Assembly: GCA_051294905.1 (NCBI GenBank)
Contig: CM119373.1
Location: 35,278,001 to 35,342,000 of the forward strand
DNA length: 64,000 nucleotides
Source: Botryllus schlosseri
Taxonomy: Eukaryota
Direction of reading: 5' to 3'
In this document: one piece after another, positions 4,282-55,084 of the stretch
Layout: each line of letters starts with the position of its first letter
Numbering within the stretch: position 1 is the first letter of the stretch
The notes under the pieces: generated by a model
What the model saw: only the letters and a program-made list of their open reading frames with translations
What the model was told of the DNA's origin: nothing
Databases searched by the model: none
Translations under genes and position numbers: made by a program

Positions 4282-6147
4282 ATGGATATTGTGAGCTGCT
4301 TGCCTGATGAAATCTGGATAAAGATCCTTGATCACCTACCAGTACATGACCGTCTCGAATGGGTTAAATTTACACACAGAAGATTTTTTCATCTCGCTGG
4401 AGACATGCCTGCTGTCGAAAATCTCGATTTTCACGGGTGTAGTTATGTATCGAGCAACACGTTTCTGCGTATAATCAAGCGCTCGAGAGACAGTGTGAGA
4501 TTTTTATCTTTCCGCGATTGCGCTTGGCTTTCGGATCAAATCTGCACCACCATGCCAAGATTGAAAAATCTCGTTACTCTGGATATCATGGGATGTTTCT
4601 TGAGCAGCGAAATCTTACACAGTCTACTTCGCTCTACTCGTTCCATAAAAAAATTAGCTTTATCCACTACGGAACTGGTCATGAAAGATTTTTGTCGGTT
4701 GCAGTCAAAACGCGGACTGTCACTTCGAGTGTTACACGTAGAATTGCTTCACGATCCCGAAAAAGTCTGTAGTGACGAAACCAGAACGGTGTTGAAGAAT
4801 TTCATCAAGACATGCTGTTATTCTAAACCGCACTGCATTACAGTCCAAACGCTCAAGCATTTGCCTCTTTACGAATTTCAGGATATTCTAATAGAAGCCA
4901 ACCTTATAGTGTATCGAGACTCAATCCACAGAGTGATGAGGGAGGATTACGCTGAAACATACCAAAATCAGATGCTGTTTGCCGTTGCTTTACATCGTGA
5001 CGGCAGTGAACTGTCATCAGGTTGCTTAGATGCAGCCCGCGTGCTGTCTCTTCCTATGCAGATGAGACATAGGAATATACTTGGATCGTGTTATTGTAAA
5101 GGGAAATGCCTGCCTTTTACGCTACATGAACTGGAGTATCTCATTTGCTCAAGAGATGAATATTGTGATGACCCAGATACTGCTGAAACGGTTTTGCTTA
5201 ACTGCCGCATTCCAAAACTTACCCATCTAGACTTGGGCAGACGGTTCGATTCTTGTTTGGGGTCCTTTGACGATATATTCAAGAAATTACCGTCTTTCAC
5301 AAACCTAGTTGAACTGAATCTGTCTGGCCTGGACTTGGATGCGAACACGCTGCTGATTGCAATTGTGGGCATGAAATATTTGAAGGGTTTGTCATTCTCA
5401 CTTCACATTCCATCACAATGTGACTCAAAACAGAATGGAATGGTTTTAAGGTCAAGGGACAGAGATGCAGGTCGCATATATTCAATATTTTTGTCCAAGT
5501 TGACGACAAATTTCCCAGGTTTGGAAAAGCTGGAACTGATCTGTAGCGTGGATGCAAGAAAATACGTTACTGTCTGTGATCTGAAACCAATTGCAAAGCT
5601 CACCAAACTGCGTCATCTATCTCTACATCGATTTCCTTTGGACAATGTGGATCAGCTCGCACAGATCCTGTCCGAGAATATGAATATTTCTTCATTAGAT
5701 CTCGGTCACTTTGAGACAGATGTTGTCTGTGATTTTTCTGAGTGTTTTGCTTCGTTACGCAATCTCAATTATCTACGACTTGCCCATGATGATTTAGAGT
5801 CTGTATCGAAATTCCGCAATTTGCACATGAGTAGAAATCTTCAAAGATTCACTCTGTATTCGAATTCCACCTTGTCACCGGCGTGGATCGAGTCATTTCT
5901 GGGACCGGTTGTTGCAACCTGCAATCTGTTCTGTATGTGCCATATTGCTTGCAAAAATGTGGATGCAGATGTTAAAAGGCTAATTGCAAAATACCGGCAA
6001 ATTTGTGAATCGAAATACCGTAACAAGGTGATATTGTCATGCAGTGGTAATCGTATGACCCAACATCCAGTGTGCCAAAGTTGGCAGGGACGCGCAATCT
6101 CACAGGTCGCCACATACAGCCCTTTTGACATCGTAAAAAAACCATGA
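4282..6147 (+). CDS. FBXL18-like: F-box/LRR protein (FBXL18-like), intact paralog 2, 621 aa (alternative ATG at 4279)
   Basis: Uninterrupted ORF colinear with paralog 1. Start placed at the conserved MDIV; acceptor-like AG at 4258-4259. Confidence 0.92.
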   Translation: MDIVSCLPDEIWIKILDHLPVHDRLEWVKFTHRRFFHLAGDMPAVENLDFHGCSYVSSNTFLRIIKRSRDSVRFLSFRDCAWLSDQICTTMPRLKNLVTLDIMGCFLSSEILHSLLRSTRSIKKLALSTTELVMKDFCRLQSKRGLSLRVLHVELLHDPEKVCSDETRTVLKNFIKTCCYSKPHCITVQTLKHLPLYEFQDILIEANLIVYRDSIHRVMREDYAETYQNQMLFAVALHRDGSELSSGCLDAARVLSLPMQMRHRNILGSCYCKGKCLPFTLHELEYLICSRDEYCDDPDTAETVLLNCRIPKLTHLDLGRRFDSCLGSFDDIFKKLPSFTNLVELNLSGLDLDANTLLIAIVGMKYLKGLSFSLHIPSQCDSKQNGMVLRSRDRDAGRIYSIFLSKLTTNFPGLEKLELICSVDARKYVTVCDLKPIAKLTKLRHLSLHRFPLDNVDQLAQILSENMNISSLDLGHFETDVVCDFSECFASLRNLNYLRLAHDDLESVSKFRNLHMSRNLQRFTLYSNSTLSPAWIESFLGPVVATCNLFCMCHIACKNVDADVKRLIAKYRQICESKYRNKVILSCSGNRMTQHPVCQSWQGRAISQVATYSPFDIVKKP

Positions 6148-7679: not shown

Positions 7680-8467
7680 TTGCATATCAACAATGGTATC
7701 GCAAAAATGAAGTCACCGGCATTGAAATGTCGAATAATCAAGGTGATGTCCTTTCGAATTCTCCACTAGTTGATAACGGTCACCTCTGACGAGAGTCAGC
7801 CAAAAATATTCGAGTTGATTTCAGTATGAATATGCTATCCAGAAGAGTAATAATTGTACATCATTATGCATACATATCACATTTCGTATATAGGTTTTCA
7901 TGCATAAATATCATTGCAAGAGAGAATGGCCTATGTAGGTGTCTGGTTTTGGGTGAAACAATTCAAATGCTATGAGGATCATTTGAAAAATGAAGCCCGT
8001 ATACTGGGGGCAAAGAAATGAACCATGTCCTCGTTATTGGTTTCACCGCATATAAGATATTGAATTTATGTATATCATCGTGCATGATTAATTTAATTTT
8101 CAATGCTTCCACTGTTCAGCAGTATCCATTTCCATATTTCATTTTATGCATCAGCATCATGTTCATTTGTTGTTATTTTGACTTGCTCACTTCACTTTTG
8201 TCTCACACTGTTTACGTACCTGACACCATGCTAGTTGTCACATGCATATGGTATAATATATCAGCATTTTCTTTCAATAGCTGCCAAACAATCACATGCT
8301 CAATTGCATCAACCTGCTAAAAATCCATCATTTGTTGTTATTTTCAAATGAACAGTGTTTGATACATCATCCCCATTTCATTTATACTACGGTATATCAC
8401 CCTTCTATTTTCAGATTATAGTTTCAGTTAAAACTTGTTACTACGTTTCATCTGTAACTATTTCCTA

Positions 8468-10324
8468 ATGGATATTGTTGGCGGCTTGCCCGATGAAATA
8501 TGGTTGAAGATTCTCGGTTACCTACCGGTACACGATCGTCTTGAATGGGTTAAGTTTACAAACAGAAGATTTTTACAGCTTGCTGGAGATATCACCGCTG
8601 TCCAAAATCTCGATTTTCACGGATGTAGTTATGTATCGAACGATCAGTTTTTGAAGATAATCAATCGTTCGAAGGACAGTGTGAGATTTTTATCTTTCCG
8701 GGACTGTGCTTGGTTCTCGAATCAAATTTGCACCACCATGCCGAGATTGGAAAATCTTGTTACACTGGATGTATTGGGTTGTTTCTTGAGTAGCGAAACA
8801 TTACATAGTCTACTTGGTGCCACATGCTCCTTAAAAAGACTGGCTCTATCCATTACGGAACAGGTCATGACAGATTTTTGTCTCTTGAAGTCAAAACGCA
8901 GATTGTCACTTCGAGTCTTGCATGTGGAATTGCTTCGCGATCCCAAAACTTTCTATGGTAGCATAAGCCAAACCATGACGGTGTTGAGTGATTTTATTAA
9001 TACATGCTGTCACATGCCGCACTGCGTTTCAGTCCAAACGCTGAAGTATATACCTCTTGAAGATTTTAAAAACATTATGATTGAGGCAAATCCTGCGATT
9101 GATCGTGACTCCATCCAAATGGTGACGAGGGAAGATTGTGATGAAACTTATCTAAATCGGTTACTGATTGCCGTTGCTTTACATAGGGATGTGAGTTCTC
9201 TGTCGGTTGGTTGCTTAGATGAATCGCGATTACTCTGCCTTCTTATGCAGATAAGACATGAGAACTTGCTCCCATCTGAACTACATCCGCATTTTTATTC
9301 CCCGCGGGACGAATATGTTGATGATCCAGATTCTGCTGATTTTGTTTTGTTTAATTGCTGGATCCCAAAACTGAGACATCTAAACATCGACAGATATTGT
9401 AGTTTTGATTTTGGTGTCATTGATGCATCTCCTCGTATATGCAAGAAACTACCAACTTTCACAAACCTTGTTGAGCTCAATGTATGGGGGCTGGATTTGC
9501 ATGCTAACATGCTTCTATTAGCGATTATGGATATGGAACATTTGAAGGGTTTGTCTTTTTCGCTCCATCTTCCTAAACAATGTGAGCTGGATCCAGGGCA
9601 GGATGTGTGGAATTATAAAGCTGAGACAATAGATGCCGATGAAGAAAGTTGCAGATATTCGATATTTTTGTCGAAATTGGTGAACAATTTCCCGGATTTG
9701 AAAAAGCTTGAAATGAAGTGTAGCGAACATGCCCGAAAATTCGTTTCTGTCAGTGAATTGGAACCAATCGGGATACTGGGCCAACTTCGCCATCTATCTC
9801 TACACAGATTCATTTTGGACGATGTAGATCAGCTTGTACAAATCCTATCCAAATGCATGAAAATATCATCATTGGATCTCGGTCACTTTGAGACTGATGT
9901 TGCCCATGATTTTTCAGAGTGTTTTGCTTCGTTGCGCCATCTCACTTATCTACGACTTGCCCATGATGACTTGGAGGGTGTATCGAAATTCCACGATTTG
10001 CACATGAGTAGCAATCTTCAAAGATTCACTTTTTATTCAGAGTCCACCTTGTCACCGGCGTGGATCGAGTCATTTCTGGGACCGGTTGTTGCAACTTGCG
10101 ATCTGTTCTGTATGTGCCATATCGAATGTCAATATGTGAATGCGGCTGTGAAAAAGTTGATTGCAAAGTACCGGAAGCTTTGTGAATCAAAATATCGTAA
10201 CAATGTGGTGTTGTCATGCAGTAATGAACTTGTCAGCCAACATCCAGTGTGTCAAAGTTGGCAGGCACGTTCGTTCTCTACTGTTGCCACGTGCAGCCCT
10301 TTTGACTTTGTAAAGAGACCATGA
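8468..10324 (+). CDS. FBXL18-like: F-box/LRR protein (FBXL18-like), intact chimeric paralog 3, 618 aa
   Basis: Uninterrupted ORF; acceptor AG at 8413-8414. The N-terminus matches the 55085 copy and the body matches the 59338 copy. Confidence 0.92.
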   Translation: MDIVGGLPDEIWLKILGYLPVHDRLEWVKFTNRRFLQLAGDITAVQNLDFHGCSYVSNDQFLKIINRSKDSVRFLSFRDCAWFSNQICTTMPRLENLVTLDVLGCFLSSETLHSLLGATCSLKRLALSITEQVMTDFCLLKSKRRLSLRVLHVELLRDPKTFYGSISQTMTVLSDFINTCCHMPHCVSVQTLKYIPLEDFKNIMIEANPAIDRDSIQMVTREDCDETYLNRLLIAVALHRDVSSLSVGCLDESRLLCLLMQIRHENLLPSELHPHFYSPRDEYVDDPDSADFVLFNCWIPKLRHLNIDRYCSFDFGVIDASPRICKKLPTFTNLVELNVWGLDLHANMLLLAIMDMEHLKGLSFSLHLPKQCELDPGQDVWNYKAETIDADEESCRYSIFLSKLVNNFPDLKKLEMKCSEHARKFVSVSELEPIGILGQLRHLSLHRFILDDVDQLVQILSKCMKISSLDLGHFETDVAHDFSECFASLRHLTYLRLAHDDLEGVSKFHDLHMSSNLQRFTFYSESTLSPAWIESFLGPVVATCDLFCMCHIECQYVNAAVKKLIAKYRKLCESKYRNNVVLSCSNELVSQHPVCQSWQARSFSTVATCSPFDFVKRP

Positions 10325-16323: not shown

Positions 16324-18200
16324 ATGGATGTTGTGAGTAGCTTGCCAGAGGAAATGTGGTTGAAGATTCTCGAATACCTTCCACTTCATGACCGTTTTGA
16401 ATGGGTCAAACTTACGAACAACAGGTTATTTCACCTTGCTGGAGACATATCTGCAGTCCAAGATCTCGATTTTCACGGCTGTAGTTACATATCGAGCGAT
16501 CAGTTTTTGAAAATAATCGATCGTTCAAAAGACAGTGTGAGATATCTTTCCGGGACTGTCCTTGGCTCTCGAATCAAATCTGCACCACCATGCCAAGATT
16601 GAGAAATCTTGTAACACTGGATATACTAGGCTGTTTCTTGAGTAGCGAAACATTGCACAGTCTACTCCGTGTTACGCACTGCCTAAAAAGGTTGGCTCTA
16701 TCCACTACGGAACGGGTCATGGGAGATTTTTGTCGGCTACAGCCAAAGTGTGGATTGTCACTTCAAGTATTGCATGTAGAATTTCTTGAAGATCCCGAAA
16801 CATTCTACAGGTTTGATTCCAGTATGGCGCTAAAGAATTTAATCAAGAATTGTTGTCATCCAAAACCACAGTGCGTGTCAGTTCAAACGACCAAGGATTG
16901 GATTCTTTTTGATTCTAGGGATATTTTCATAGAACCATATCTTGACGTTTATCGAGACTTCAGCCAATTAGTGACGAGGAAAGATTATACTGAAATGTAC
17001 CAAAATCATTTACATGTTGCCGTTGCTTTACATCAAGATGGCAGTGCTCTGACGACGGGTTGCTTAGATAAAGCCAGGGTACTTTGTTTCCCTAATTGGT
17101 TGTCAGAACTCGATTTGTTTGCAACATGTTGTTGTGAAGGACGTCCCCTCCCTAACACTCTATATGAACTTGAGTATCTGGCTTGCTCAAGCGACAATTA
17201 TCATCCTGTTCTAGGCCGTTCTGCCGAAGATGTTTTACTAAATCGTTGCATTCCTAATCTCACCCATCTAGACTTGGGTAGATGGCGGCGGTATTCTGGT
17301 GTCACCAAGGGTATATGCAGGAAATTACCTTTTTTTACAAACCTTGTTGAGCTGAATGTGTGTAGGCTGGACTGGGATGCTAACATGCTCCTATTTGCAA
17401 TTATGGGCATGAAGCATTTGAAGGGTTTGTCGTTTATGCTACATATTCCTTTACAATGTGACCATGATCCAAAGCAGAATCTAGTGAATTTTACGGCAAC
17501 TGAGACAAGGGACACAGATGCGAGTTGCAGATATTCGATATTTTTGTCAAAATTGGTGAAAACTTTCCCAGATTTTGAGAAGTTGGAAATGATGTGTAGC
17601 ATGGATGCCAGAAAATGCGTTGCTGTCAGTGATTTGGAACCGATTGGGATACTGGCCAAACTTCGTTATCTAACTCTACATAGATTTCCCTTGGACGATG
17701 TAGATCAGCTTACGAAAATCCTATCCAAGAGCACGAAAATAGGATCATTGGATCTCGGTCACTTCGAGACTGATGATGTCTGTGATTTTTCAAGGTGTTT
17801 TGCTTCATTACGCAATCTCGTTTATCTACGACTTGCACATGATGATTTGGAGTCTGTCTCAAAATTCAACGATTTGCACATGAGTAGAAATCTTCAAAGA
17901 TTAACCTTGTCTTCAAATCCCTTTTTGTCAGCAGTGTGGATCGAGTCGTTTCTGGGACCGGTCGTTGCAACGTGCGATCTGTTTTGTATGTGCCATATCA
18001 CATGTAGAAATGTGGATGCAGATATTGAAAAGGTCATTGAAAGATACCGCAATATTTGTGAATCGAAATACCGTAAAAGGGTGATATTGTCATGCAGTGA
18101 TGACCGTATCAGTCACCATCCAGTTTGTCAAAGTTGGGAGGGACTGTCATTTTCGTCCGTCGCCACATACAGCCCTTTTGACTTTCTAAAGAAACCTTGA
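16324..18200 (+). pseudogene. F-box/LRR copy with a single 4-nt frameshift, giving a 92-aa F-box ORF plus a 536-aa LRR ORF (16590-18200)
   Basis: gtgagatatctttcc at ~16538-16551 versus gtgagatttttatctttcc in paralogs. The rest of the frame is open to the normal stop. Acceptor AG at 16307-16308. Confidence 0.85.
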
Positions 18201-21482: not shown

Positions 21483-23327
21483 ATGGATATGGTGAGCAGT
21501 TTGCCGGATGAAATGTGGTTGAAGATTTTCGAATACCTACCACTGCGCGATCGTCTTGACTGGGTCAAATTTACGAACAAACGATTTTTTCACCTTGCTG
21601 GAGACATATCTGCAGTACAAGATCTCGATTTTCACGGATGTAGTTATGTATCGAACGATCTGTTTTCGAAGATCATCAATTGTTCAAAAGACAGTGTGAG
21701 ATTTTTATCATTCCGGGACTGTCCCTGGCTCTCGAATCAAATCTGCACCACCTAGCCGAGATTGAAAAATCTTGTTACACTGGATATATTGGGGTGTTTC
21801 CTGAGCAGCGAAACATTATACAGTCTTCTTCGTGCCACTTTCTCATTAAAAAGATTGGCTCTATCCACTACGGAACGGGTCATGACAGATTTTTGTCGGT
21901 CGCAATCAAAGTGTGGATTATCGCTTCGAGTCTTGCATTTAGAATTTCTTAAAGATCCCGAAGCAGTCTTTATAGACAGTGACGACTACATGATGGTGCT
22001 ACAGAGTTTTATCAAGACTTGTTGTCATTCAAAACCACACTGCGTTTCAGTCCAAATGCTTCATATATCTCGTCTAGAAGCTTTTGAAAATATTTTGATT
22101 GGGGCAAATCTTTCCATTCAGCGAGACTGCACCCAAATAGTGAAAAAGACAAATTTTAATCAAACATACTACAATCACATAGTGACTGCAGTTGCTTTAC
22201 ATCAAGACGACAGTGCTCTGTCGTCGGATTGCTTAGATAAAGCCAGGGTACTCTGTCTTCCTACTTCGTGTAGAAATTTTGGTATGGCTTCATGTTATTG
22301 CCAAGGACGTCCCCTTCCTAACACACTTCACGAACTTGAGTATCTGATTTGCACGCAAAGTCATCATTTCTATAACTTAAATTTATCTCCTGCGTTCGTA
22401 TTGCGATTCTGCCACTATCCTAATCTCACGCACCTAGACTTGGGCAACTGGCGTCCTCCTTATTTTGGTATCATCACGGAATTATGCAGGAAATTTACAT
22501 TTTTCACAAACCTCGTTGAGCTGAATGTGCGTGGGCTGGACTTTGATTCTGACATGCTTCTAGGTGCGACTATGGGCATGAAACATTTGAAGGGTTTGTC
22601 GTTTTCACTACACGACTCGGATTTAAAGCAGAATGTGACTGAGACAATGGACACAGAAGCAAGATGCAGACACTCAATGTTTTTGTCCGAATTGGTGTCA
22701 AGTTTCCCAGGTTTGGAAAAGCTGGAAGTTGATGCCAGAAAATATGTTGCTTTATGTGATCTAAAACCAATTGCGAAGCTGGCCAAACTTCGTTATCTAT
22801 CTTTACATCGATTTCGTTTGAACAATGTAGATCACCTTGCACAGATCCTATCAAACAACAAGAATCTATCATCATTGGATCTCGGTCACTTTGAGACAGA
22901 TGTCGTCTGTGATTTTTCAGAGTGTTTTGCTTCGTTACGCCATCTCATTTACCTACGACTTGCCCATGATGATTTGGAGTCTGTATTAAAATTCAACGAT
23001 TTCCACATGAGTAGAAATCTTCAAAGATTCGCTTTGTATTCAAAGTCCACCTTGTCACCAGCTTGGATCGAGTCAATTCTGGGGCCGGTCGTAGCAACGT
23101 GCGATCTGTTTTGTATGGGACATGTCGAATGTCCAAATGATGGTGGGGATGTGGAAGAGGTCATTGCAAAGTATCGGACTATTTGTGAATTGAAATATCG
23201 TAACAACGTGATATTGTCGTGCAGTAGTGATCACTTCAGGCAACATCCAGTGTGTCAAAGTTGGCAGGGAAGGTCGTTTTCGTCTGTTGCCACATACAGC
23301 CCTTTTGACTTTCTGAAGAAGCCTTAA
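21483..23327 (+). pseudogene. F-box/LRR copy with one in-frame TAG at codon 91 (90-aa F-box peptide plus an otherwise open LRR frame)
   Basis: accaccTAGccgaga at 21753-21755 replaces accaccATGccgaga. The frame continues without stops to TAA at 23325-23327. Confidence 0.88.
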
Positions 23328-23659
23328 GTGTAAATTAACCGGTTTACTATCATATTTCTGTTTTGAATTTTGTTCAACGTCATTGAACTGCCATTTTTTG
23401 AATTAATACTTTTTGCTGTATTTCGTTTTCTCCTTCGTTTCACTGACAAATTCTCAAAACATACTCTTGTAGGCTAGTTGTACGGTATGTCGATTGGATG
23501 ACATTGTCGTAGGAGTATGGTTGCATCATGTTATTGTAAAGGACGTCACCTTCCTAACACACTACAGAAACTTGAGTATCTGATTTGCTCCCAAGAAGGT
23601 CATTGTTGCGACCTAGATGATCGAGTTTAGAAGGATTTTTTAAATGTAGTATTCCCAAG

Positions 23660-23882
23660 TGTGTCCTTGTGTAGATTTTGTGTACTAACTGTTACCTCGG
23701 ACGCTGATCATAGCGCGTGCGACTGATTGATTGCTCGTTAATTAGTTTGAATGGTGTTAGCTGATGGTCGTGGATATTGGGAGACAGAGCTCGTGTGACC
23801 CGTGTAGAGAGATGTTGCTTTGTTGTTGTTGCGTTACAGTTGTGGCACTTTTCGTTTTCATCTTTTAAATATACTTCCTACA
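23660..23882 (+). repeat. 5' LTR of the gag-only element
   Basis: TGTGTCC...TTCCTACA, direct repeat of 24714-24936. Confidence 0.95.
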
Positions 23883-23906
23883 AGCTATCGCGGCCCATCA
23901 ACGATA

Positions 23907-24599
23907 ATGGCCAGTTTCAAGGTGACGGATGTGTTGACGCGGTATGATGGAGCGGGTGATATAGCAACATGGATAAAGCAGGCGAAACTGGCAAAAGGTT
24001 TGCTAAAACTTGAGAATTTGGCTGTCGTAATCCCGATGTTTCTCGATGGTGACGCATTTGCCGTGTACGACCAGTTACTGGAGACTGAAAAGAGTGACGA
24101 AGATCGCATCGAAGAGGCTCTGTTGCGTGCCTTCGCCTGTGATCAGCTTTCGGCGTATGGGGAATTCAAGACGAGGGTGTTGAATGAAGGGGAATCGGTC
24201 GACGTTTTCCTTGCCGACTTGAAACGATTAGCAAAGTTGGCGGGTATCGGTCAAAACGACGACGAACAGCTGTTGAAATTATCTTTCGTCTTTGGGTTGC
24301 CGAAACGTGTGTCTGCTCAGATAAGGGCGACACCAAAGGCGGAGCAGTTACAATTGACTGAGGTGCTATCGATAGCACGTGCCCTCGTTACCGATCATGA
24401 GTTGGATGGTGCCGAGATGAGCGCCGTTGCCAATTCTTATGATAAAGAAAGAAGAGTGCGGTGTTTTCTATGTGGTGGACCACATTTAAGAATATTCTGT
24501 AAATCAATTGTATGTTTTCGTTGCAACGAAAGCGGCCACATTGCTCGATATTGCCAGAAGGTTGACCGGCGGATGGGAGGCCAACGTGGAGAGCTGTGA
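23907..24599 (+). CDS. Retrotransposon Gag (230 aa) with two zinc knuckles
   Basis: ATG 24 nt after the LTR. Capsid-like YDGAGDIATW...IPMFLDGDA...GESVDVFLADLKRLA; knuckles CFLCGGPHLRIFC and CFRCNESGHIARYC. Confidence 0.9.
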   Translation: MASFKVTDVLTRYDGAGDIATWIKQAKLAKGLLKLENLAVVIPMFLDGDAFAVYDQLLETEKSDEDRIEEALLRAFACDQLSAYGEFKTRVLNEGESVDVFLADLKRLAKLAGIGQNDDEQLLKLSFVFGLPKRVSAQIRATPKAEQLQLTEVLSIARALVTDHELDGAEMSAVANSYDKERRVRCFLCGGPHLRIFCKSIVCFRCNESGHIARYCQKVDRRMGGQRGEL

Positions 24600-24713
24600 C
24601 TTTGAAGGGGTGACGAGAGATGGAGAGAAGAGATAAGAGGCGGAGAGAGATGGAGAGACGAGATGAGAGACGATGATGAATGGTGATGAAGAGTGATATT
24701 CATCACGGGGGAA

Positions 24714-24936
24714 TGTGTCCTTGTGTAGATTTTGTGTACTAACTGTTACCTCGGACGCTGATCATAGCGCGTGCGACTGATTGATTGCTCGTTAATTAGT
24801 TTAAATGGTGTTAGCTGATGGTCGTGGATATTGGGAGACAGAGCTCGTGTGACCCGTGTAGAGAGATGTTGCTTTGTTGTTGTTGCGTTACAGTTGTGGC
24901 ACTTTTCGTTTTCATCTTTTAAATATACTTCCTACA
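24714..24936 (+). repeat. 3' LTR of the gag-only element
   Basis: Direct repeat of 23660-23882, followed by TSD CCAAG. Confidence 0.95.
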
Positions 24937-26861
24937 CCAAGTTCACACATCTAGACTCAGTCAGACGGCATCATACTCATTCTGGTACCATCGGAGCTAT
25001 ATGCAGGAAATAACCATTTTGTAATATCCATATCAATAATATGTTTATTTCTATATTGGCAGTCTATAAAATTTTGTTGATCCTTAACAATTGTACAGAA
25101 TATCAGCTATTGCAGTTGCGAATATTGCATACATTTGACATTTCGTTTATTGATTTTTGTACATAAATGTAATTTCAATGTAGTAAGCAAGTAAAGAGGT
25201 GTCGGGATTTGGGTGAAACACGTCAAATGATATGAAAATCCATTGCCAAATGAAGCTCCCATACTGGGGTGAAGCAAAGAACCATGACCTCGGTATTGAT
25301 TTCATGTTTTCTATTGTGCATGATTAATTTTGATTTTTAGATATGTTCACACTTTGATATCCTACATTAACATTTTGTTGATTTTTGCTGTTATTTTCAT
25401 CTTTCCATACCTGCAAATAAAATAAGACTCTGAGACGTTCGTATACGGTAGCTCATAATTATTGCTCCATTGCTTGGCACGATCTGTGAGCATTTTGCGT
25501 TGATCTACATAATCATGACTCCTTAATTAGCATTGTGATATCTGTGATGAATTTTCTTTATAGAGTTAAATGCTTGTAGCAATTATGGAGTTGGGTGCAT
25601 CGATGAAGGATAACTTTCTTCTGGATAAGTCTGTGGCATTTATTAACAACGGATCGTTTGGACCAGTGCCAAAGTGTGTTTTGGAAGAGAGAATGAAGTA
25701 GGTAGACAATAATATTAGTGGTGAGCCTTTGGGTTAGTAGTAGTCTGTAGGTCTGGGCAAAATCGAATATCTGAGTGATTTCATTCTGAGTTGAGTATTA
25801 ACCTTCAAGTTGACTTGGGCATTCGGATATCAGTCATTGTGACGTCGTATTGGTGTGAATGGTGTGGCAAATTTGAATATGTACTTTCATGCCAGCGGTT
25901 CTCAATCGCCGGCCAGTGTCAAATTTGATATCTTAATTTCAAAATGCAAGAACTTGGACGCCCGTCAATTAATTAGAGCAGGATTGGTGCGCGGCTGCCT
26001 ACAGTTGTGCTGACTTTCTCTGAAAATTAGCTCTTCGTTCCGTATTCAAGTGCTCGATTTATCATTGCAATTTATATAGAGCAGTGCTTTTCAACCTGTG
26101 TGACGGTTCGCACTGGTGCGAATGAAAAAAATTTCAGTGCGAATGACGAGCGTGGTGCGAATGGTGCGAATGAAAAATCCGGATGAGTGCGAACGGCAAG
26201 CGTGGTGCGAATGGTGCGAATGAGAAATCCGGATGAGTGCGAATGAAAATTGTCCATGTTTCTCACTTTTCCGACGTGGAATAATTCAAATAAGAACGAT
26301 ATAAGTACAGTGAGCCCGTAAATTTTGTCGTTTGGAAGCAATTCTAAAAACTTGTTGGTAGCTAGGCTTTTCTAGTTCACAAGTGAGGAACGTTCCCGAT
26401 GCGTGTATAATGCAAAGTTTGAGATAATATTTCCGCACGAGAGGATTACATCACTGCATGGAAAAAAGAAGGAGTTGGAAACGGTATCAGTTGCTCACTT
26501 GCTCGGAAACATCCACCGTGTATGGATATTGTATACAGGCCTTGTATGAATGTAGTAGGTTATAGTAGCTGATGCCAGTGTTGACATTTGGCATATTTGA
26601 ATGCAAAATATTGGAATTTTCGCACACATTCATGTTGGTTAACAGCAGAATTTCGCGTTTCTTCAACTATAACAATTAGCACATTAGATCTATAACAAGT
26701 GTTGTTTACTCGTGTACCTTACCAAGGATTAGAGGCCAGAGAGACCAGTGCCAAGGCCTGTTTGTAATGCGAACTCCACAATTTTGGCTTAGACACGCTT
26801 TCCTGTTCTTGGACTGATGATCTCAGGCCAAGTCTAAGTAAAGGCATAGGCCTATATAGAA

Positions 26862-32096: not shown

Positions 32097-32345
32097 ATTG
32101 ATATTGGACATAATTATAGGCTATTACAAAGCTCTAAATTACCTTCATGTGGTGTCTAATTGGTATTTGGGAATATAGGTTTGAATTTCATGCGTGAACT
32201 GCACACCATCGCACTAGCCTTCTCTAAAAATCTCCCTTTTTTTTCTCATTCAAATAAGCATTTCTCCATATATCATTCCAATGGTATCACCATTCTATTT
32301 TCAGATGATAGTGTAGAGTTGAAGCTTTTTGTTAAAGATTTCATA

Positions 32346-34226
32346 ATGGATATGGTGAGCAGCTTGCCAGATGAAATGTGGTTGAAGATTCTCGAAAAGC
32401 TACCACTGCACGATCGTCTTAACTGGGTCAAATTTACGAACAAACGGTTTTTTCACCTTGCTGGAGACATATCTGCAGTACAAGAACTCGATTTTCACGG
32501 ATGTAGTTATGTATCGAACGATCTGTTTTCGAAGATCATCAATTGTTCAAAAGATAGTGTGAGATTATTATCTTTCCGTGATTGCCCTTGGCTCTCAGAT
32601 GAAATCTGCACCACTATGCCAAGATTGAAAAATCTTGTTACTCTGGATATATTAGGGTGTTTCTTGAGCAGCGAAACATTACACAGTCTTCTTCGTGCCA
32701 CTCGCTCCATAAAAAAACTGGCTCTATCCACTACAGAACTGGTCATGAAAGATTTTTGTCGGTTGCAGTCAAAACGCGGATTGTCACTTCGAGTGATACA
32801 TGTAGAATTGCTTCACGATCCCGAAAAAGTCCGTAGTGACGAAACCAGAACGGTGTTCAAGAATTTTATCAAGACATGCTGTCATTCTAGACCACACTGC
32901 GTTACGGTCCAAACGCTGAAGAACTTATACTTTAATTTAAAAGATATTTTGATTGAGGCAAATCGTGCGCTTTATCGAGACTACTTTCGAACAGTGAGGA
33001 GTATAGCTTGTGATCGAACTTACGGAACTAAGATACTGACTGCTGTTGCTTTACATAGAGCTGTCAGTCCTCTGTCGGCGGATTGCTTAGATGAAGCTCG
33101 GGTACTCTGCCTTCCTATGCAGAAAAGCCGTGATAAGGTGCTCGCATCATGTTATTGTAAAGGAGAACACCTGTCTATTGCACTACATGTACTGGAGTAT
33201 CTGATTTGCTCGCGGGATGAATATATTGATGATCCAGATTCTGCTGAGGCAGTTTTGCTAAATTGCCGTATCCCGAAACTGACACATCTAAACTTATTCA
33301 CCAGTTACCGAAGTATTCCCTGCCATTTCACCGAAGTATTCCAGGGTATATGCAAGAAATTACCAGCTTTCACAAACCTTGTTGAGCTGAATGTGTGTTG
33401 GCTGGAGCTGCCTGCTAACATGCTTCTATTGGCAATCATGGACATGAAACATTTGAAGGGTTTGTCTTTTTCGCTCCATCTTCCTATACAATGTGACCCG
33501 GATCCAGAGCAGGACGTCATGAATTTTACAGCCGAGACAAGAGACACCGATGAAAGTTGCAGATATTCGATATTTTTGTTGAAATTGGTGAGAAATTTTC
33601 CGGATTTGGAAAAGTTAGAAATGATATGTAGCATGGATGCCCGAAAATCCGTTGCTGTCAGTGATTTGGAACCGATTGGTATGCTGGCCAAACTTCGTTA
33701 TCTATCTCTACACAGATTTATTTTGGACGATGTACATCAGCTTGCAAATATCCTATCCAGAAGCACAAAGATATCATCATTGGAGCTTGGTCACTTTGAG
33801 ACTGATGTTGAATGTGATTTTTCAAAGTGTTTTGCTTCATTACACGATCTCATTTATCTACGACTTGCCCATCGTGATTTACAGTCTGTATCGAAATTCC
33901 GCGATTTGCACATGAGTAGAAATCTTCAAAGATTCACTTTTCGTTCAGAGCGCGCATTGTCAGCAGCGTGGATCGAGTCATTTCTGGGACCTGTCGTTGC
34001 AACCTGTGATCTGTTTTGCATGTGCCATATCGAATGTGGAAATGGGGATGAGGAGGTGGTGAAAAGGGTCATTGCAAAATACCGGAATATTTGTGAATTG
34101 AAATACCGTAACAGGGTGATATTGTCATGTAGTGATAAACGCATCAGGCAACATCCAGTGTGCCAAAGTTGGCAGGGACGCTCGTTCTCAACTGTTGCCA
34201 CATGCAGCCCTTTTGACTTCATATAG
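32346..34226 (+). CDS. FBXL18-like: F-box/LRR protein (FBXL18-like), intact mosaic paralog, 626 aa
   Basis: Uninterrupted ORF from the conserved MDMV; acceptor AG at 32303-32304. It stops 3 codons earlier than paralogs (TAG where they have a Lys codon). Confidence 0.92.
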   Translation: MDMVSSLPDEMWLKILEKLPLHDRLNWVKFTNKRFFHLAGDISAVQELDFHGCSYVSNDLFSKIINCSKDSVRLLSFRDCPWLSDEICTTMPRLKNLVTLDILGCFLSSETLHSLLRATRSIKKLALSTTELVMKDFCRLQSKRGLSLRVIHVELLHDPEKVRSDETRTVFKNFIKTCCHSRPHCVTVQTLKNLYFNLKDILIEANRALYRDYFRTVRSIACDRTYGTKILTAVALHRAVSPLSADCLDEARVLCLPMQKSRDKVLASCYCKGEHLSIALHVLEYLICSRDEYIDDPDSAEAVLLNCRIPKLTHLNLFTSYRSIPCHFTEVFQGICKKLPAFTNLVELNVCWLELPANMLLLAIMDMKHLKGLSFSLHLPIQCDPDPEQDVMNFTAETRDTDESCRYSIFLLKLVRNFPDLEKLEMICSMDARKSVAVSDLEPIGMLAKLRYLSLHRFILDDVHQLANILSRSTKISSLELGHFETDVECDFSKCFASLHDLIYLRLAHRDLQSVSKFRDLHMSRNLQRFTFRSERALSAAWIESFLGPVVATCDLFCMCHIECGNGDEEVVKRVIAKYRNICELKYRNRVILSCSDKRIRQHPVCQSWQGRSFSTVATCSPFDFI

Positions 34227-37389: not shown

Positions 37390-37551
37390 TGTAATGTACT
37401 AACTTAAGACTTTATTCATGCGAACATAACAGAAGGTCCTGACGTGCAGGGCAACAGAAAACGAATGACTATCGTCGTTTACTCGACACAGTACAACACA
37501 ATTCAGTAATTGTAATCAAGTAATAATAATGTCCAATCACGATACACATCA
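37390..37551 (-). repeat. 3' LTR of the Gypsy element
   Basis: Identical to 41855-42016. Preceded on the minus strand by purine tract GAAAGAGGGGAGA (37552-37564). Confidence 0.96.
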
Positions 37552-37584
37552 TCTCCCCTCTTTCATCCGAAGCGTACTGTACAT

Positions 37585-40500
37585 TCACCCCGGGATATAA
37601 CGTTCAGGGCATCGTCGATTGCGCGAACTTCGACGTTGTGGATTGTGGTTAGCATCCATCTCCCACTTCTCTCCCTCCTCTGTGGTTGGCGAAACGTGAT
37701 CTATTCTCAGAAATCGTCGATTTCGCCACCATATCCGCCCGCTGCTCAGTTTAACCAAGTAATCCCGAAACTTACCAATGGCAACAATGATACCGCGATG
37801 ATGCCAACGTTTGGTGATCGGGTTTTGAATTCGAACGGAAGTTCCTATTTTGAATGGCGACAACGGATGTGCATCTCTATTATAATGATCCTCATTATAC
37901 GTCCTCACAGCCGCTGCTTTGGAATCACAATCTCGAGCTAGTTTATGCCACAATGGTGCAAACAGCTTGTGATGTGCCGGTAAACAGGTGCGAAGTGGGC
38001 GTCCGAAAAGAATTTGTGCCGGAGAACGTCCGTCCACTCTTGGTGTGTTTCTCCACTCTAGCAAACCTCGCTGAAATGAATCTGAAAAAATATCCCCATT
38101 GGGCGACGTTTTAGCCAAAAGATATTTCATGGACTTAACGGCAGCCTCCGCAAGACCATTTGATTGCGCGTAATGCGGCGTCGATACAACATGATTAACA
38201 CCCCATCGGTCCATGAATTTTCTGAAGTCATTCGAAGAGAATTGCGGTCCTCCGTCGCTTCGTAAACGCACTGGAACACCTGTGTCGGAAAAGAATTTGC
38301 GAATTACTCTGATTACCTGACGAGAGGTTGGATCCTTGTCCCATTCACAGATGCTCGGCCAACCGGAGTACCTATCGGTGTACACGAGGTATTTCTTTCC
38401 GCAATATGAAAAGAGGTCGGTTGAGACATCTTCGAAAACTCTGCTAGGAGATAGCTCAATTTCCATTGGCTCTTTTGGTAAACTTGGCAAATATTCCTGG
38501 CATCTCCCACATGACTGTACCACATTCTCTATGTCAGTGCTCATCCCTGGCCAGTATAAAGTTTGTCTCGCCCGCCTCTTCATTCTGACTATGCCTTGAT
38601 GAGCATCATGCAATCGTGCAAGCGCTTCTCCTTTAAATCCACACGGGACTACAATTCGTGCATTGTATAGAACCAAGCCATCGTCTATACTTAGATCATT
38701 CCGAATCTTCCAATACGGCTGCACGGCAATAGGTGCGTTTTCGCATTTAGCAGGGAACCCCTTTCGGATAATCTCGATTAATGACTGATAATTATTGTCA
38801 GTGAGTGCAACTTGTCTCATGCGCGATAAGACCGGGTCTTCTAGTGCGTTCAACGATCCACCCGCTTGCTCGCTTCTGAAAATTTGGCTCTTGATGGTGA
38901 GATGGCATGCCATGCAAGCGGCGTCATCTCTTTCCGCTGCTTGATCCTCTCTTGTTGGGTCTTGCACTGGCGCTCTTGACAATGCATCAGGAATGGCATG
39001 AAGTTTTCCTTTCCTCCATGACGTCGTAAATACAAATGCAGATAACTTCTCTTTCAGTCGCTGAAGTCGTGGGTTCTCGATGGAATCCAACGTTTGAGCA
39101 TTTAGAATGGAAACTAGCGGCTGATGGTCGACAACCACATCAAAATGCTGCAATCCTGTCAGAAATAGTTTGCATTTGCGTGCTGCCCACACAACTGCAA
39201 GAAGTTCTAGCTCCACCATTGCATATCGCGATTCTGTCTCACTTAGAAACCGGGAGCCGCATTGAACCAGTCTCCATGTGTCACCGTGCAACTGTAATAG
39301 AGCGTATCCCAAACCTCTTGTCCTGGATGCATCTGTTTGCAAACTCGCGGGCAACTTCGGATCGAATGTTGCTAATACAGGTGTATTAGTCAATGCTGCT
39401 TTCGTCTTCCGAAATGCGTCGGCCTGTACGCTGGACCAGATGAACTCATTTCTCGTTTTGAGTAGACAGCGAAGAGGCTCTGCCACTGTGCTGATCTCCT
39501 TCGAAAATTCCCCCAATTGATTCACCATTCCCATGAAGCTACGTAATTCTGTGATGTTGGTTGGAGCAGGAAATTCTGTAATCGCCTTCACTTTATCAGG
39601 ATCTACAGATATTCCGTCCTTGGATATAATGAATCCAACAAATTTGACTTCGCTTTTTGCGAATCTTGTCTTTTTACGGTTCAGCGTTATTTTATTTTCA
39701 CGACACCGCTGCAGCAAACTCCATACTCGATGGACGTGTGACTTGAAGTCTTCGGAATGAACGAGAATATCGTCAACGACTTTTGCGACATCCTGGAGCC
39801 CTCTCAGTGCTTCGTCCCCTCTGCGACAGTATTCATCTCCCGTTGAAACTAAGCCCATTGGTGCGCGCAGAAATTTGAATTTTCCCCAAGGAGTCATGAA
39901 CGTAGTGAGCAATTGAGAGTCCTTCTCTAGCGGGAGCTGCCAATATCCGTGTGTTGCATCAAACGTGCTCATGTACTTCGTGTTGTTCGGTATCTGCGCG
40001 ACAGCTTCCTTTGCTGTCACCAATGGGTATCCCGGACGTTTCACGAACTTGTTCAATTTGGTCAAGTCAACACATAAACGTATACCTCCACCGGGTTTCT
40101 GCACCAGTACCATCGGATGGCACCACTCTGTGGGCGAGGTGACCGGTTCGATAATACCCTTGACTATCATCTCGTCGATAAGTTTTTTCGCATCTTCCCT
40201 TTGAGGAAACGGAACCGCCCGTGCAGCGTGTATGGCATAGGCTTCAAAATTTTCTTTGACATGTATCTTCATATCAGCACCCGTCATAGGCGACAGCTTG
40301 ACATCGTTTGAAAAAACGTCTTCAAAATGCTGGAATATACGTTGCTCGATTCGACAGATCTCAGCCATGTCCGGTTCGGTAGGTATATCACCGATAACCT
40401 CACGTAACATGTCTCGTTTATCGGTAACTACTTGTTTAGCAATAGGTAATGGAGACGGATAATTTGCCGGAAGAATTCCCAACTCCTTGCAAACATACCA

Positions 40501-41802
40501 CGCAAGCATCGCTCCTTCGCAATCATTACAGATGAGAACTTCAAGAGTCACCTTTCTACCGCCGTATTCCATCTTCAAAACAACATATCCTACGCATTTC
40601 ATCGGTTGCAAATTTGCAGCGAGGACAGCGTCGCAAGGCGGCTTGGAATAATCAGCACGTTTCAATCCGATCGACATGATCCACTCTTCGCACGCGATTG
40701 AAATTCCCGCTCCACTGTCAGGCAACACGGCATGCCGTCCCAAATTACGATCTCGAACATCATACACAGTAATGAATACCGATGGTGGTGCTCTTCCAAC
40801 GACACGCCCCGATAGATTGTAGCATGTTATCACCATATTCTTCGGCAAGTTTGTTGCTTGGCACATTCGAGAGAAATGTCCACTCTTTCTACAAGAGAAG
40901 CATATTGCCTCTTCTGCTGGGCATCTAGCGGCTTCTGCATGAGGTAGCCCACAATTACGACATGTGTTCGCCTCTTTGCTCACTGGTTTCCTGCTCCTTA
41001 TGACTTTGCTCACAGTATGCCCATTCCATTCTGAACTTGCAGTCGCCAAGGCTTGGTCACCTATGGATGCCGATTCCATACTCCGACATATGTCCACAGC
41101 TTCCTTCAAACTGGGAAAGGATTTGGTTTGCATCAGACGTTTCCTCACTTCTCCTGATATGACGCCTGAAATAATGCGTGTTGTCAAACGCGTTTCAAAA
41201 CAATGCTTGCAAAGTTCGGAATTATTGGCAATCTTCCTCAGATCCATATAAAATGAGTCAAAGCTTTCGCCAACTCGTTGTTTGCGTTCTTCAAACTCCA
41301 CTCTATCAAGAGCAACATTCCGCTGATCTCTCAAGTATTTATAGATTCGTTCTAGAATATCTTTGACCGTTAGATCGGTTTGTTCGGAGTATTGTGGATA
41401 AATTACGTGGATAAGTGTGTCCAGTAATTTTGGGGAAAAGAATCCTTTAAGGTGGGATACTTGTTCGCCGTTCGGTAAACTCGTTAGTCTCATAACTGTT
41501 GCATAATCTGCCCATAATTGCTCCCATCCTCGAAAGTCTTTTATGTCAATATCTGCCTCAAGTCTTGGTGGTTTATTCGGAGACACGTGACTGGATGTTT
41601 TCTCCGAACGTTCCGAGTTAAGCTTAAGTTGCCCCAAAAGAGATGCAATGACATCTTTATGATCAGCTTCCATGCGCTGCAACACCTCTTTGTGGTGATC
41701 TTCCAATCTCTTCAACTCATCTTCCCTTTGTTTTTCGCGTTTCTCTGATTCCCCAATCAAGTGTTCGAGCAGTTCCTCCACTTGTTTTCCTCTCGTAGCC
41801 AT
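37585..41802 (-). CDS. Gag-Pol polyprotein, 1405 aa (Gag-PR-RT-RNaseH-IN)
   Basis: Knuckles CRNCGLPH..C and CFSCRKSGHFSRMC; protease LPDSGA; RT FDATHGYWQ and VVDDILV; RNase H TDAS...ELELLAV...DHQPL; integrase H-H-C-C, STDLF...SDGGPQF...NGLAE. The domain order is that of Ty3/Gypsy. Confidence 0.97.
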   Translation of the reverse strand: MATRGKQVEELLEHLIGESEKREKQREDELKRLEDHHKEVLQRMEADHKDVIASLLGQLKLNSERSEKTSSHVSPNKPPRLEADIDIKDFRGWEQLWADYATVMRLTSLPNGEQVSHLKGFFSPKLLDTLIHVIYPQYSEQTDLTVKDILERIYKYLRDQRNVALDRVEFEERKQRVGESFDSFYMDLRKIANNSELCKHCFETRLTTRIISGVISGEVRKRLMQTKSFPSLKEAVDICRSMESASIGDQALATASSEWNGHTVSKVIRSRKPVSKEANTCRNCGLPHAEAARCPAEEAICFSCRKSGHFSRMCQATNLPKNMVITCYNLSGRVVGRAPPSVFITVYDVRDRNLGRHAVLPDSGAGISIACEEWIMSIGLKRADYSKPPCDAVLAANLQPMKCVGYVVLKMEYGGRKVTLEVLICNDCEGAMLAWYVCKELGILPANYPSPLPIAKQVVTDKRDMLREVIGDIPTEPDMAEICRIEQRIFQHFEDVFSNDVKLSPMTGADMKIHVKENFEAYAIHAARAVPFPQREDAKKLIDEMIVKGIIEPVTSPTEWCHPMVLVQKPGGGIRLCVDLTKLNKFVKRPGYPLVTAKEAVAQIPNNTKYMSTFDATHGYWQLPLEKDSQLLTTFMTPWGKFKFLRAPMGLVSTGDEYCRRGDEALRGLQDVAKVVDDILVHSEDFKSHVHRVWSLLQRCRENKITLNRKKTRFAKSEVKFVGFIISKDGISVDPDKVKAITEFPAPTNITELRSFMGMVNQLGEFSKEISTVAEPLRCLLKTRNEFIWSSVQADAFRKTKAALTNTPVLATFDPKLPASLQTDASRTRGLGYALLQLHGDTWRLVQCGSRFLSETESRYAMVELELLAVVWAARKCKLFLTGLQHFDVVVDHQPLVSILNAQTLDSIENPRLQRLKEKLSAFVFTTSWRKGKLHAIPDALSRAPVQDPTREDQAAERDDAACMACHLTIKSQIFRSEQAGGSLNALEDPVLSRMRQVALTDNNYQSLIEIIRKGFPAKCENAPIAVQPYWKIRNDLSIDDGLVLYNARIVVPCGFKGEALARLHDAHQGIVRMKRRARQTLYWPGMSTDIENVVQSCGRCQEYLPSLPKEPMEIELSPSRVFEDVSTDLFSYCGKKYLVYTDRYSGWPSICEWDKDPTSRQVIRVIRKFFSDTGVPVRLRSDGGPQFSSNDFRKFMDRWGVNHVVSTPHYAQSNGLAEAAVKSMKYLLAKTSPNGDIFSDSFQRGLLEWRNTPRVDGRSPAQILFGRPLRTCLPAHHKLFAPLWHKLARDCDSKAAAVRTYNEDHYNRDAHPLSPFKIGTSVRIQNPITKRWHHRGIIVAIGKFRDYLVKLSSGRIWWRNRRFLRIDHVSPTTEEGEKWEMDANHNPQRRSSRNRRCPERYIPG

Positions 41803-41836
41803 CTATGATAATTTGTGTGGCCTTTCTTTTAAATAG

Positions 41837-41854
41837 ATCCTGCCGACAACGCCA
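41837..41854 (-). other. Primer-binding site, probably tRNA-Ser
   Basis: Minus-strand TGGCGTTGTCGGCAGGAT abuts the 5' LTR. The plus-strand ATCCTGCCGACAACGCCA matches the recalled 3' end of metazoan tRNA-Ser (ATCCTGCCGACTACG-CCA) at 17/18. Confidence 0.8.
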
Positions 41855-42016
41855 TGTAATGTACTAACTTAAGACTTTATTCATGCGAACATAACAGAAG
41901 GTCCTGACGTGCAGGGCAACAGAAAACGAATGACTATCGTCGTTTACTCGACACAGTACAACACAATTCAGTAATTGTAATCAAGTAATAATAATGTCCA
42001 ATCACGATACACATCA
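41855..42016 (-). repeat. 5' LTR of the Gypsy element
   Basis: Identical to 37390-37551, followed by TSD AGCAG. Confidence 0.96.
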
Positions 42017-54187: not shown

Positions 54188-55084
54188 TTGCATATCAACA
54201 ATGGTATCGCAAAAATGAAGTCACCGGCATTGAAATGTCGAATAATCAAGGTGATGTCCTTTCGAATTCTCCACTAGTTGATAACGGTCACCTCCGACGA
54301 GTGTCAGCCAAAAATATTCGAGTTGATTTCAGTATGAATATGCTATCCAGAAGAGTAATAATTGTACATCATTATGCATACATTTCACATTTCGTATATA
54401 GGTTTTCATGCATAAGTATCATTGCAAGAGAGAATGGCCTATGTAGGTGTCTGGTTTTGGGTGAAACACTTGAAATGTTATGAGGATCATTTGAAAAATG
54501 AAGCCCGTATACTGGGGGGTGAAGAAATGAACCATGTCTTCGTTATTGGTTTCACCGCATATAAGATATTGAATTTATGTTTATCATCGTGTATGATTAA
54601 TTTAATTTTCAATGCTTCCACTGTTCAGCAGTATCCATTTCCATATTTCATTTTATGCATCAGCATCATGTTCATTCTCGCTGTTATTTTGACTTGCTCA
54701 CTTCAATTTTGTCTCACACTGTTTACGTACCTGACACCGTGCCAGTTGTCACATGCATATGGTATAATATATCAGCATTTTCTTTCAATAGCTGCCAAAC
54801 AATCGCCGCCGTCTTATTCTATCCACACACGCTTTTGTTTCTCAATTCAATATTCTGATTACATCGCTGGATTTAGCGCGTAGCCTTTTTGTGCATATAA
54901 GAGCTGCTTATCACGTGCTCAATTGCATCAACCTGCTAAAAATCCGCCATTTGTTGTTATTATCAAATAAACAGTGTTTGATATATCATCCCCATTTCAT
55001 TTATTACGGTATATCACCCTTTTATTTTCAGATCATAGTTTCAGTTAAAACTTGTTACTACTTTTCATCTGTGAAGATTTCGTA

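Follow-up and report, generated by a model that had tools for sequence, protein, structure and literature searches.

The 64,000-nucleotide stretch of the Botryllus schlosseri genome considered here (contig CM119373.1, forward-strand positions 35,278,001 to 35,342,000; hereafter the window) contains a short long terminal repeat (LTR) retrotransposon in which Gag is the only open reading frame (ORF) between the LTRs, with no protease (PR), reverse transcriptase (RT), RNase H, or integrase (IN). It belongs, as a member without pol, to a compact (~4.0- to 4.6-kb) LTR lineage that encodes Gag followed by PR, RT, RNase H, and IN. We favor the reading, at a probability of roughly 0.6, that it is a young, gag-only, non-autonomous copy of this lineage, mobilized by the Pol of a helper and already reduced to gag when it inserted. 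Taken alone, the gag-only state describes a kind of element that is already known; the unusual part is the priming site of the lineage, a 12-nt motif that in two of its forms is the exact complement of a tRNA 5' end.

The element has the structure of a complete LTR retrotransposon (Table 1), with LTRs, a target site duplication (TSD), a site at the position of the primer-binding site (PBS), along with a polypurine tract (PPT), the PBS being non-canonical in that it lacks TGG. The LTRs start with TGTG and end with TACA, in the TG..CA manner, and are identical at 222 of 223 positions, the sole difference being a G at 23749 versus an A at 24803. The flanks of the element are a fragment of one of the F-box/leucine-rich repeat (LRR) paralogues of the window, and when three such paralogues (near 56000, 5200, and 1050) are aligned over the point of insertion, the alignment shows a gap of precisely 5 nt. 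Because these three paralogous empty sites carry only one 5-nt copy, the 5-bp TSD is real. An earlier note on this DNA had described a complete and young element, with 223-nt LTRs differing at one position and CCAAG on both sides, and the analysis bears that description out. The note was also right that the sequence directly after the 5' LTR, AGCTATCGCGGCCCA, is without TGG and that a GA-rich stretch of about 115 nt with a purine tract separates gag from the 3' LTR; the measured distance from the gag stop is 114 nt, and the stretch is microsatellite-like, ending in a hairpin and then GGGGGAA. Its statement that no trace of PR, RT, or IN remains stands as well, in that four related Pol proteins used as queries found no similarity in the element even at E ≤ 10. 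A scan against Rfam gave no match inside the element.

The relatives that place the element are 31 loci (L001 to L031). Scanning metagenomes with Gag yielded 27 of them, at 29 to 46% identity; a scan of prokaryote genome records added four, and a scan of viral contigs gave no match. The four (L028, on JAZGFI010000132.1 from a Planctomycetota metagenome-assembled genome [MAG], and L029 to L031, on CAXXMW010000015.1 from an “Arenicella sp.” MAG) are evidently eukaryotic contamination of the two bacterial bins under which their contigs are filed. Wherever a related locus has enough sequence, a Pol of ~960 amino acids in the -1 frame comes directly after Gag. The Pfam order in the four Pol proteins examined (L004, L010, L018, and L021) is aspartyl protease, RVT_1 (weak), DUF7047, RNase H (RVT_3), integrase zinc finger, and integrase core, and these autonomous members thus have the PR-RT-RNase H-IN order of Ty3/gypsy elements. 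The RT matches RVT_1 only below the cut-off, with no match to the RT_RNaseH domains (PF17917/PF17919) that are typical of Ty3/gypsy; between the RT and the RNase H, which is of the RVT_3/RNase HI type, lies DUF7047; and a sequence comparison of the RT-RNase H portion with the PDB gave no hit even at E ≤ 5. We file the lineage, provisionally and by domain order only, as gypsy-like.

Complete autonomous copies measure 4.0 to 4.6 kb, with LTRs of ~140 to ~350 nt (L006 and L023), and 4.0-kb periods are seen in L010, L011, and L016. A search with one lineage Pol returned 407 proteins at E ≤ 1e-20, most on contigs of 3.5 to 4.8 kb, the few named relatives being listed as “uncharacterized protein” and coming from a bryozoan (Watersipora subatra) and a leafhopper (Macrosteles quadrilineatus). 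The lineage occurs in hundreds of assemblies, in metagenomes, and in animal genomes. Many relatives (L008, L010, L011, L014, L016, L018, L025, and L026) are stand-alone contigs of 3.5 to 4.8 kb, often circularly permuted or longer than one unit; the permuted contigs read Pol end, LTR, Gag with a period of ~4.01 kb, and they may reflect LTRs collapsed by the assembler, tandem arrays, or circular forms. One 25-kb MAG contig consists of an 8.1-kb tandem unit holding two tRNA-Ser(UGA) genes together with rearranged copies of the element.

The only evidence here that bears on whether the element belongs to a propagating family or is a one-off comes from the frameshift signal. Of 25 related gag genes, 23 have, just after the second zinc knuckle, a heptamer of the form X XXY YYZ in phase (GGGAAAC, GGGAAAT, GGGAAAA, or AAAAAAC), with Pol open in the -1 frame, and the two genes that lack it are visibly degenerate copies. 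Examples are found at 4211 in L010, 893 in L004, and 1290 in L016. At the protein level the heptamer is traced by a conserved Gly-Asn or Lys-Asn in the Gag of autonomous relatives. The homologous place in the window element reads GGGAGGC, changing Gly-Asn to Gly-Gly, and the gag stop follows five codons on; the Gag of one relative (P0011) ends at the same place. Given a single difference over the 223 sites of the LTRs, two substitutions in the heptamer since insertion are very unlikely. Loss of the heptamer therefore predates the insertion, and the parental RNA was already without the frameshift signal. With that signal already lost and the cis elements intact, non-autonomy at insertion is favored, and the element probably moved as a non-autonomous unit that was already gag-only when it inserted. 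All the cis elements of the lineage are kept, namely, the TG..CA LTRs, the 5-bp TSD, the 12-nt PBS, and the hairpin with its G-rich PPT.

A different history is a one-off deletion, in which a ~4-kb element inserted recently and a genomic loss of ~2.9 kb then took Pol, so that there is no gag-only family and the copy never moved in its short form. This account would leave the LTRs and the TSD just as they are seen, agrees with the single copy in the window, and has parallels in the rearranged and internally deleted relatives that are known, L030 among them. The deletion would, however, have had to spare the gag ORF, the PBS, and the hairpin and PPT yet remove all recognizable Pol, and an element whose heptamer was lost before insertion could not itself have made Pol and would have needed mobilization in trans anyway. 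We regard this history as unlikely.

The Gag protein is intact, as the earlier note had stated; its ORF of 230 codons holds two CX2CX4HX4C zinc knuckles, both visible in the alignment, and Pfam zf-CCHC (PF00098) matches a knuckle with an E value of 1.1e-4. A word-based protein search found 30 homologues of 136 to 304 amino acids (most 219 to 268), of which the closest, 54 to 57% identical, come from ENA assemblies with Mb-scale contigs and fall in clusters of up to 52 members (52 in P0001 and 38 in P0003). In the alignment, the window Gag keeps every column that is invariant, or nearly so, among its homologues. A family profile matched retroviral nucleocapsids at E = 1.6e-9, with weaker matches to the capsids of copia and dArc1. 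The AlphaFold model, built on a 23-sequence alignment, has a mean pLDDT of 83 and is entirely helical over residues 1 to 175; when it was compared with the PDB by Foldseek, every top match was the capsid of a retroelement (PNMA2, dArc1, MLV CA, copia, and Arc), with a probability of 1.00 and a best E value of 1.8e-3. On these grounds the window Gag is a full, genuine capsid-nucleocapsid protein. Another Gag cluster (P0004, with P0059 to P0068), 55% identical to the window Gag, lies mostly on contigs of 1.15 to 1.56 kb; these may be gag-only relatives in other organisms, or the contigs may simply be short.

An intact ORF with every family-invariant residue, a capsid fold, and Foldseek matches that include the Ty1-derived restriction factor Drt2 could also be expected of an interfering Gag, that is, a dominant-negative or copy-number-control capsid that, instead of aiding the spread of its own element, poisons the particle assembly of the autonomous relatives, in the manner of Ty1 p22/Drt2 or an Fv1-type factor, and is on its way to domestication. 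The near-identical LTRs, the intact PBS and PPT, and the fresh TSD are instead those of a recently mobile element and not of a fixed host gene, and domesticated gag genes of the Arc, PNMA, or RTL type, which are fixed in the host and have no LTRs, PBS, or PPT, differ from this locus, where LTRs, PBS, PPT, and TSD are all intact and young. There is no evidence for orthologous conservation, and such a function would in any case be compatible with mobility. We consider this explanation improbable.

The element shares its PBS with its relatives. A 12-nt motif, AGCTAT-NNN-GGC, adjoins the LTR-terminal ACA and lies 0 to ~50 nt upstream of the gag ATG. It occurs in 30 of the 31 related loci and not once on the minus strands, with about one occurrence expected by chance; in the whole window it occurs a single time, at 23883, where the copy AGCTATCGCGGC is an exact instance. 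Counted by locus, the NNN variants are TTC (15), CGC (7; the form in the window), CAC (4), CCG (2), and singletons (3). The TTC variant, AGCTATTTCGGC, is the exact complement of nucleotides 1 to 12 of tRNA-Phe(GAA), whose 5' sequence is known here from two printed oligonucleotides, a primer (human) and a 5' probe (Drosophila) (PMC10505166 and PMC7038984). The CCG variant, AGCTATCCGGGC, is likewise the exact complement of nucleotides 1 to 12 of human tRNA-Lys3 (gene sequence from PMC8715211). The complementarity is bounded by tRNA nucleotide 1 on one side and by the LTR edge on the other, the last bases of the LTR not being complementary to tRNA nucleotides 13 to 16.

Two known types of site were considered and set aside. 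The earlier note had seen a loose likeness to the half-tRNAiMet site of copia and the Hemivirus group; this did not hold, since the site is an exact instance of the lineage motif, two variants of which match instead nucleotides 1 to 12 of tRNA-Phe and tRNA-Lys3. Self-priming of the Tf1/sushi type was rejected because a complement of the PBS is absent from the LTRs of every locus, with up to 2 mismatches allowed. ARAGORN found no tRNA gene in the window and none of relevance in the related loci, and literature searches on the PBS sequence and on priming by tRNA 5' ends returned nothing pertinent, which is no proof that none has been published. At position 2367 of L023, a second motif of the PBS type, in the Lys form (AGCTATCCGGGC), lies upstream of a Phe-form element in the same contig and adjoins an unrelated gypsy-like Pol on the other strand.

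At the other end of the element, a hairpin of 5 to 8 bp, of the TGATC/GATCA type, stands beside the LTR in all 11 elements examined; as a control, 15% of shuffled 40-mers form any such hairpin. In 10 of the 11 the hairpin abuts a G-rich purine run of 5 to 9 nt and itself ends 5 to 8 nt before the LTR, the exception being L023, where the hairpin is set directly against the LTR without a purine run. Compensatory changes in the hairpin are seen in L011, L019, and the window element. The spacer between gag and the hairpin has no significant similarity to anything, and related Pol sequences found no remnant there at E ≤ 10. The Pol C termini of relatives (e.g., L004) are acidic low-complexity tails with a composition like that of this spacer, which is possibly a vestige of an acidic integrase tail. 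The junction of gag with the LTR lies in low-complexity tandem repeats of a kind that assemblers can mishandle, and a full-length element could have been collapsed across repetitive GA-rich sequence, with Pol missing only from the assembly. However, the gag stop, spacer, hairpin, and PPT form one coherent sequence, the window is without runs of N, and the loss of the heptamer is independent of any collapse. An artifact of this kind is very improbable indeed.

A second intact element in the window might have been thought the helper. This Gypsy element (37390 to 42016, minus strand) is very compact at 4.6 kb, with identical 162-bp LTRs, the TSD CTGCT, a single 1,405-amino-acid Gag-Pol ORF, and a canonical PBS of the TGG type (TGGCGTTGTCGGCAGGAT). 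It is as young as the gag-only element and unrelated to it in its cis elements: the LTR ends, the PBS (TGGCG...), and the PPT all differ, and the Gag sequences are only 26% identical. On these grounds it was rejected as the helper, in agreement with the earlier note, which had judged that the tRNA-Ser-primed Gypsy of the window was probably not the helper. An exact look-up of the window Gag, the Gypsy Pol, and one F-box protein found none of them present in a collection of 5.8 billion proteins. No autonomous member of the compact lineage was found in the window. Distant autonomous relatives have the PBS, the hairpin and PPT, and the TG..CA ends in common with the gag-only element, and the partner to look for would be one of the autonomous elements of this lineage, carrying the site in its CGC form.

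The observations suggest a model in which transcription from the LTR yields a ~1.1-kb RNA from which Gag is translated, and this Gag would co-assemble with the Gag-Pol of an autonomous relative at another place in the genome. The helper would then supply the RT, RNase H, and IN with which the short RNA is copied and integrated. Synthesis of the minus strand would begin at the 12-nt site, and the primer would be the first 12 nt of a Phe- or Lys-like tRNA that, by analogy with the copia tRNA half and with Tf1 cleavage, would have to be cut after nucleotide 12, in the D-stem. Plus-strand priming would take place at GGGGGAA.

Several points weigh against the reading that we favor. A single copy is visible, no second copy of the LTR or of gag having been found within the 64-kb window, and no family member or helper from the same genome was seen in the protein collection searched. 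A deletion in place after insertion at full length would leave the same LTRs and TSD. The frameshift argument assumes that the sub-lineage of this element recoded at the same site as relatives that are 35 to 57% identical. LTR transcription and Gag translation are predicted from the DNA, and the candidate role of a 12-nt tRNA 5' fragment as primer is deduced from complementarity alone. No tRNA beginning with GCCGCGAUAGCU, as the form of the site in the window would call for, was found by ARAGORN in the window or in the literature searched. A bolder combined proposal, that a widespread ~4-kb animal lineage and its gag-only parasite prime from a 12-nt 5' fragment of elongator tRNAs (Phe/Lys) and that the gag-only element is an actively spreading hyperparasite in an animal genome, supplying its own capsid, and no dead remnant of a deletion, is offered tentatively and seems to us somewhat unlikely.

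The closest counterparts in organization are the TR-GAG elements (terminal-repeat retrotransposons with a GAG domain) of plants (Coffea, Arabidopsis, Triticeae, and sugar beet), which have LTRs, PBS, PPT, and a Gag ORF without enzymes, as does the window element. They are defined by these features, with Gag as the only ORF, and are regarded as “semi-autonomous” and dependent on the Pol of a partner (definition quoted in PMC13570524). They are, however, derivatives of plant Ty1/copia or Ty3/gypsy elements with canonical sites for tRNA 3' ends, and they form multicopy families, whereas the window element is seen as a single copy in an animal genome, belongs to a different lineage, and has a non-canonical PBS. 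Among animals, protein-less non-autonomous LTR elements are short LTR-PBS-PPT units mobilized in trans (PMC10886601). TRIM and the protein-less elements of ants, wasps, taeniid cestodes, and bivalves, as well as Helenus and Ajax, resemble the window element in being such short units, but TRIM elements are below 1 kb and encode nothing, whereas the window element keeps a complete, conserved Gag. Literature searches for gag-only LTR elements in animals gave no pertinent result, which within the literature covered is no proof of novelty; the non-autonomous LTR elements of animals that they did return are protein-less TRIMs.

With respect to priming, the lineage resembles copia and the Hemivirus group in having a PBS without TGG that matches a part of the tRNA other than the 3' end, for which cleavage of the tRNA is required. 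The copia PBS, in work attributed to Kikuchi et al. in 1986 and Ke et al. in 1999, is said to pair with nucleotides ~25 to 39 of initiator tRNA-Met, in the anticodon arm, as a cleaved tRNA half. The window lineage differs in matching nucleotides 1 to 12, which form the acceptor strand and the beginning of the D-stem, of Phe- and Lys-type elongator tRNAs, and its domain order is gypsy-like and not copia-like. Tf1 reportedly self-primes with the 5' end of its own transcript, cleaved after nucleotide 11, according to Levin's work. An 11- to 12-nt primer from the extreme 5' end of an RNA, freed by cleavage, is what is proposed for the window lineage also, but the primer of Tf1/sushi elements is their own transcript, whereas the motif here tracks tRNA 5' ends. 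Ty3/gypsy elements, including the Gypsy of the window, share with the lineage a capsid-fold Gag, CCHC knuckles, PR-RT-RH-IN, TG..CA ends, and a 5-bp TSD. They differ from it in that the lineage has a sub-threshold RVT_1 match, an RVT_3-type RNase H, DUF7047, and no PDB match for its RT-RNase H, and the recoding, PBS, and PPT context of the window Gypsy are unlike those of the compact lineage.

Table 1. Features of the gag-only element and of its surroundings, in window coordinates
Feature	Position	Strand	Basis or remark
5' TSD copy, CCAAG	23655..23659	none	Read from sequence; single 5-nt copy in paralogous empty sites
5' LTR, 223 nt, TGTG...TACA	23660..23882	+	Direct repeat, 1 mismatch at 23749
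Putative PBS AGCTATCGCGGC, 12 nt, complementary to tRNA 5' end GCCGCGAUAGCU	23883..23894	+	Lineage-conserved motif
Leader, 12 nt, PBS to gag ATG	23895..23906	+	Sequence; leaders of relatives 0 to ~50 nt
gag ORF, 230 codons and a TGA stop; capsid with two lobes (residues ~1-175) and nucleocapsid	23907..24599	+	Homologues, profile, predicted fold
Two CCHC zinc knuckles, residues 186-198 and 203-216	24462..24554	+	Pfam PF00098; Cys/His columns conserved in alignment
Degenerate -1 frameshift heptamer remnant, GGGAGGC	24575..24581	+	Compared with 25 related gag genes
GA-rich spacer, 10- to 15-nt tandem units, non-coding	24600..24682	+	Possible vestige of acidic integrase tail
Hairpin abutting PPT; 8-bp stem GTGATGAA/TTCATCAC, or inner 5-bp GTGAT/ATCAC	24683..24706	+	Seen across relatives
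PPT, GGGGGAA	24707..24713	+	Directly before 3' LTR; relatives compared
3' LTR, 223 nt	24714..24936	+	Direct repeat
3' TSD copy, CCAAG	24937..24941	none	Sequence; paralogous empty sites
F-box/LRR array ORFs	109-2004, 4267-6147, 8435-10324, 16590-18200, 21762-23327, 32160-34226, 42533-44425, 55052-56944, 59338-61194		F-box and LRR signatures

The element sits within a tandem array of intronless F-box and LRR (FBXL18-like) ORFs of ~520 to 690 amino acids that extends across the window. A search of the 5.8-billion-protein collection with an F-box/LRR protein returned a single distant homologue (30% identity), and the genes of the window have almost no relatives in that collection. A weak match to snoR122, a C/D-box snoRNA family (27 bits, with a gathering threshold of 36; E = 0.097), lies just downstream of the gag-only element, at 25057 to 25140, and is probably due to chance.

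To our knowledge, nearly all documented non-autonomous LTR elements that retain gag are from plants. A clear case in an animal would allow a test of whether a capsid of its own aids the parasite of a retrotransposon or restricts the helper. If the proposed priming is true, the use of tRNA 5' ends would be a third mode of tRNA use in reverse transcription, besides that of the 3' end and that of the tRNA half, and would link 5' tRNA fragments directly to the replication of retroelements; the model predicts a 12-nt RNA attached to the strong-stop cDNA.

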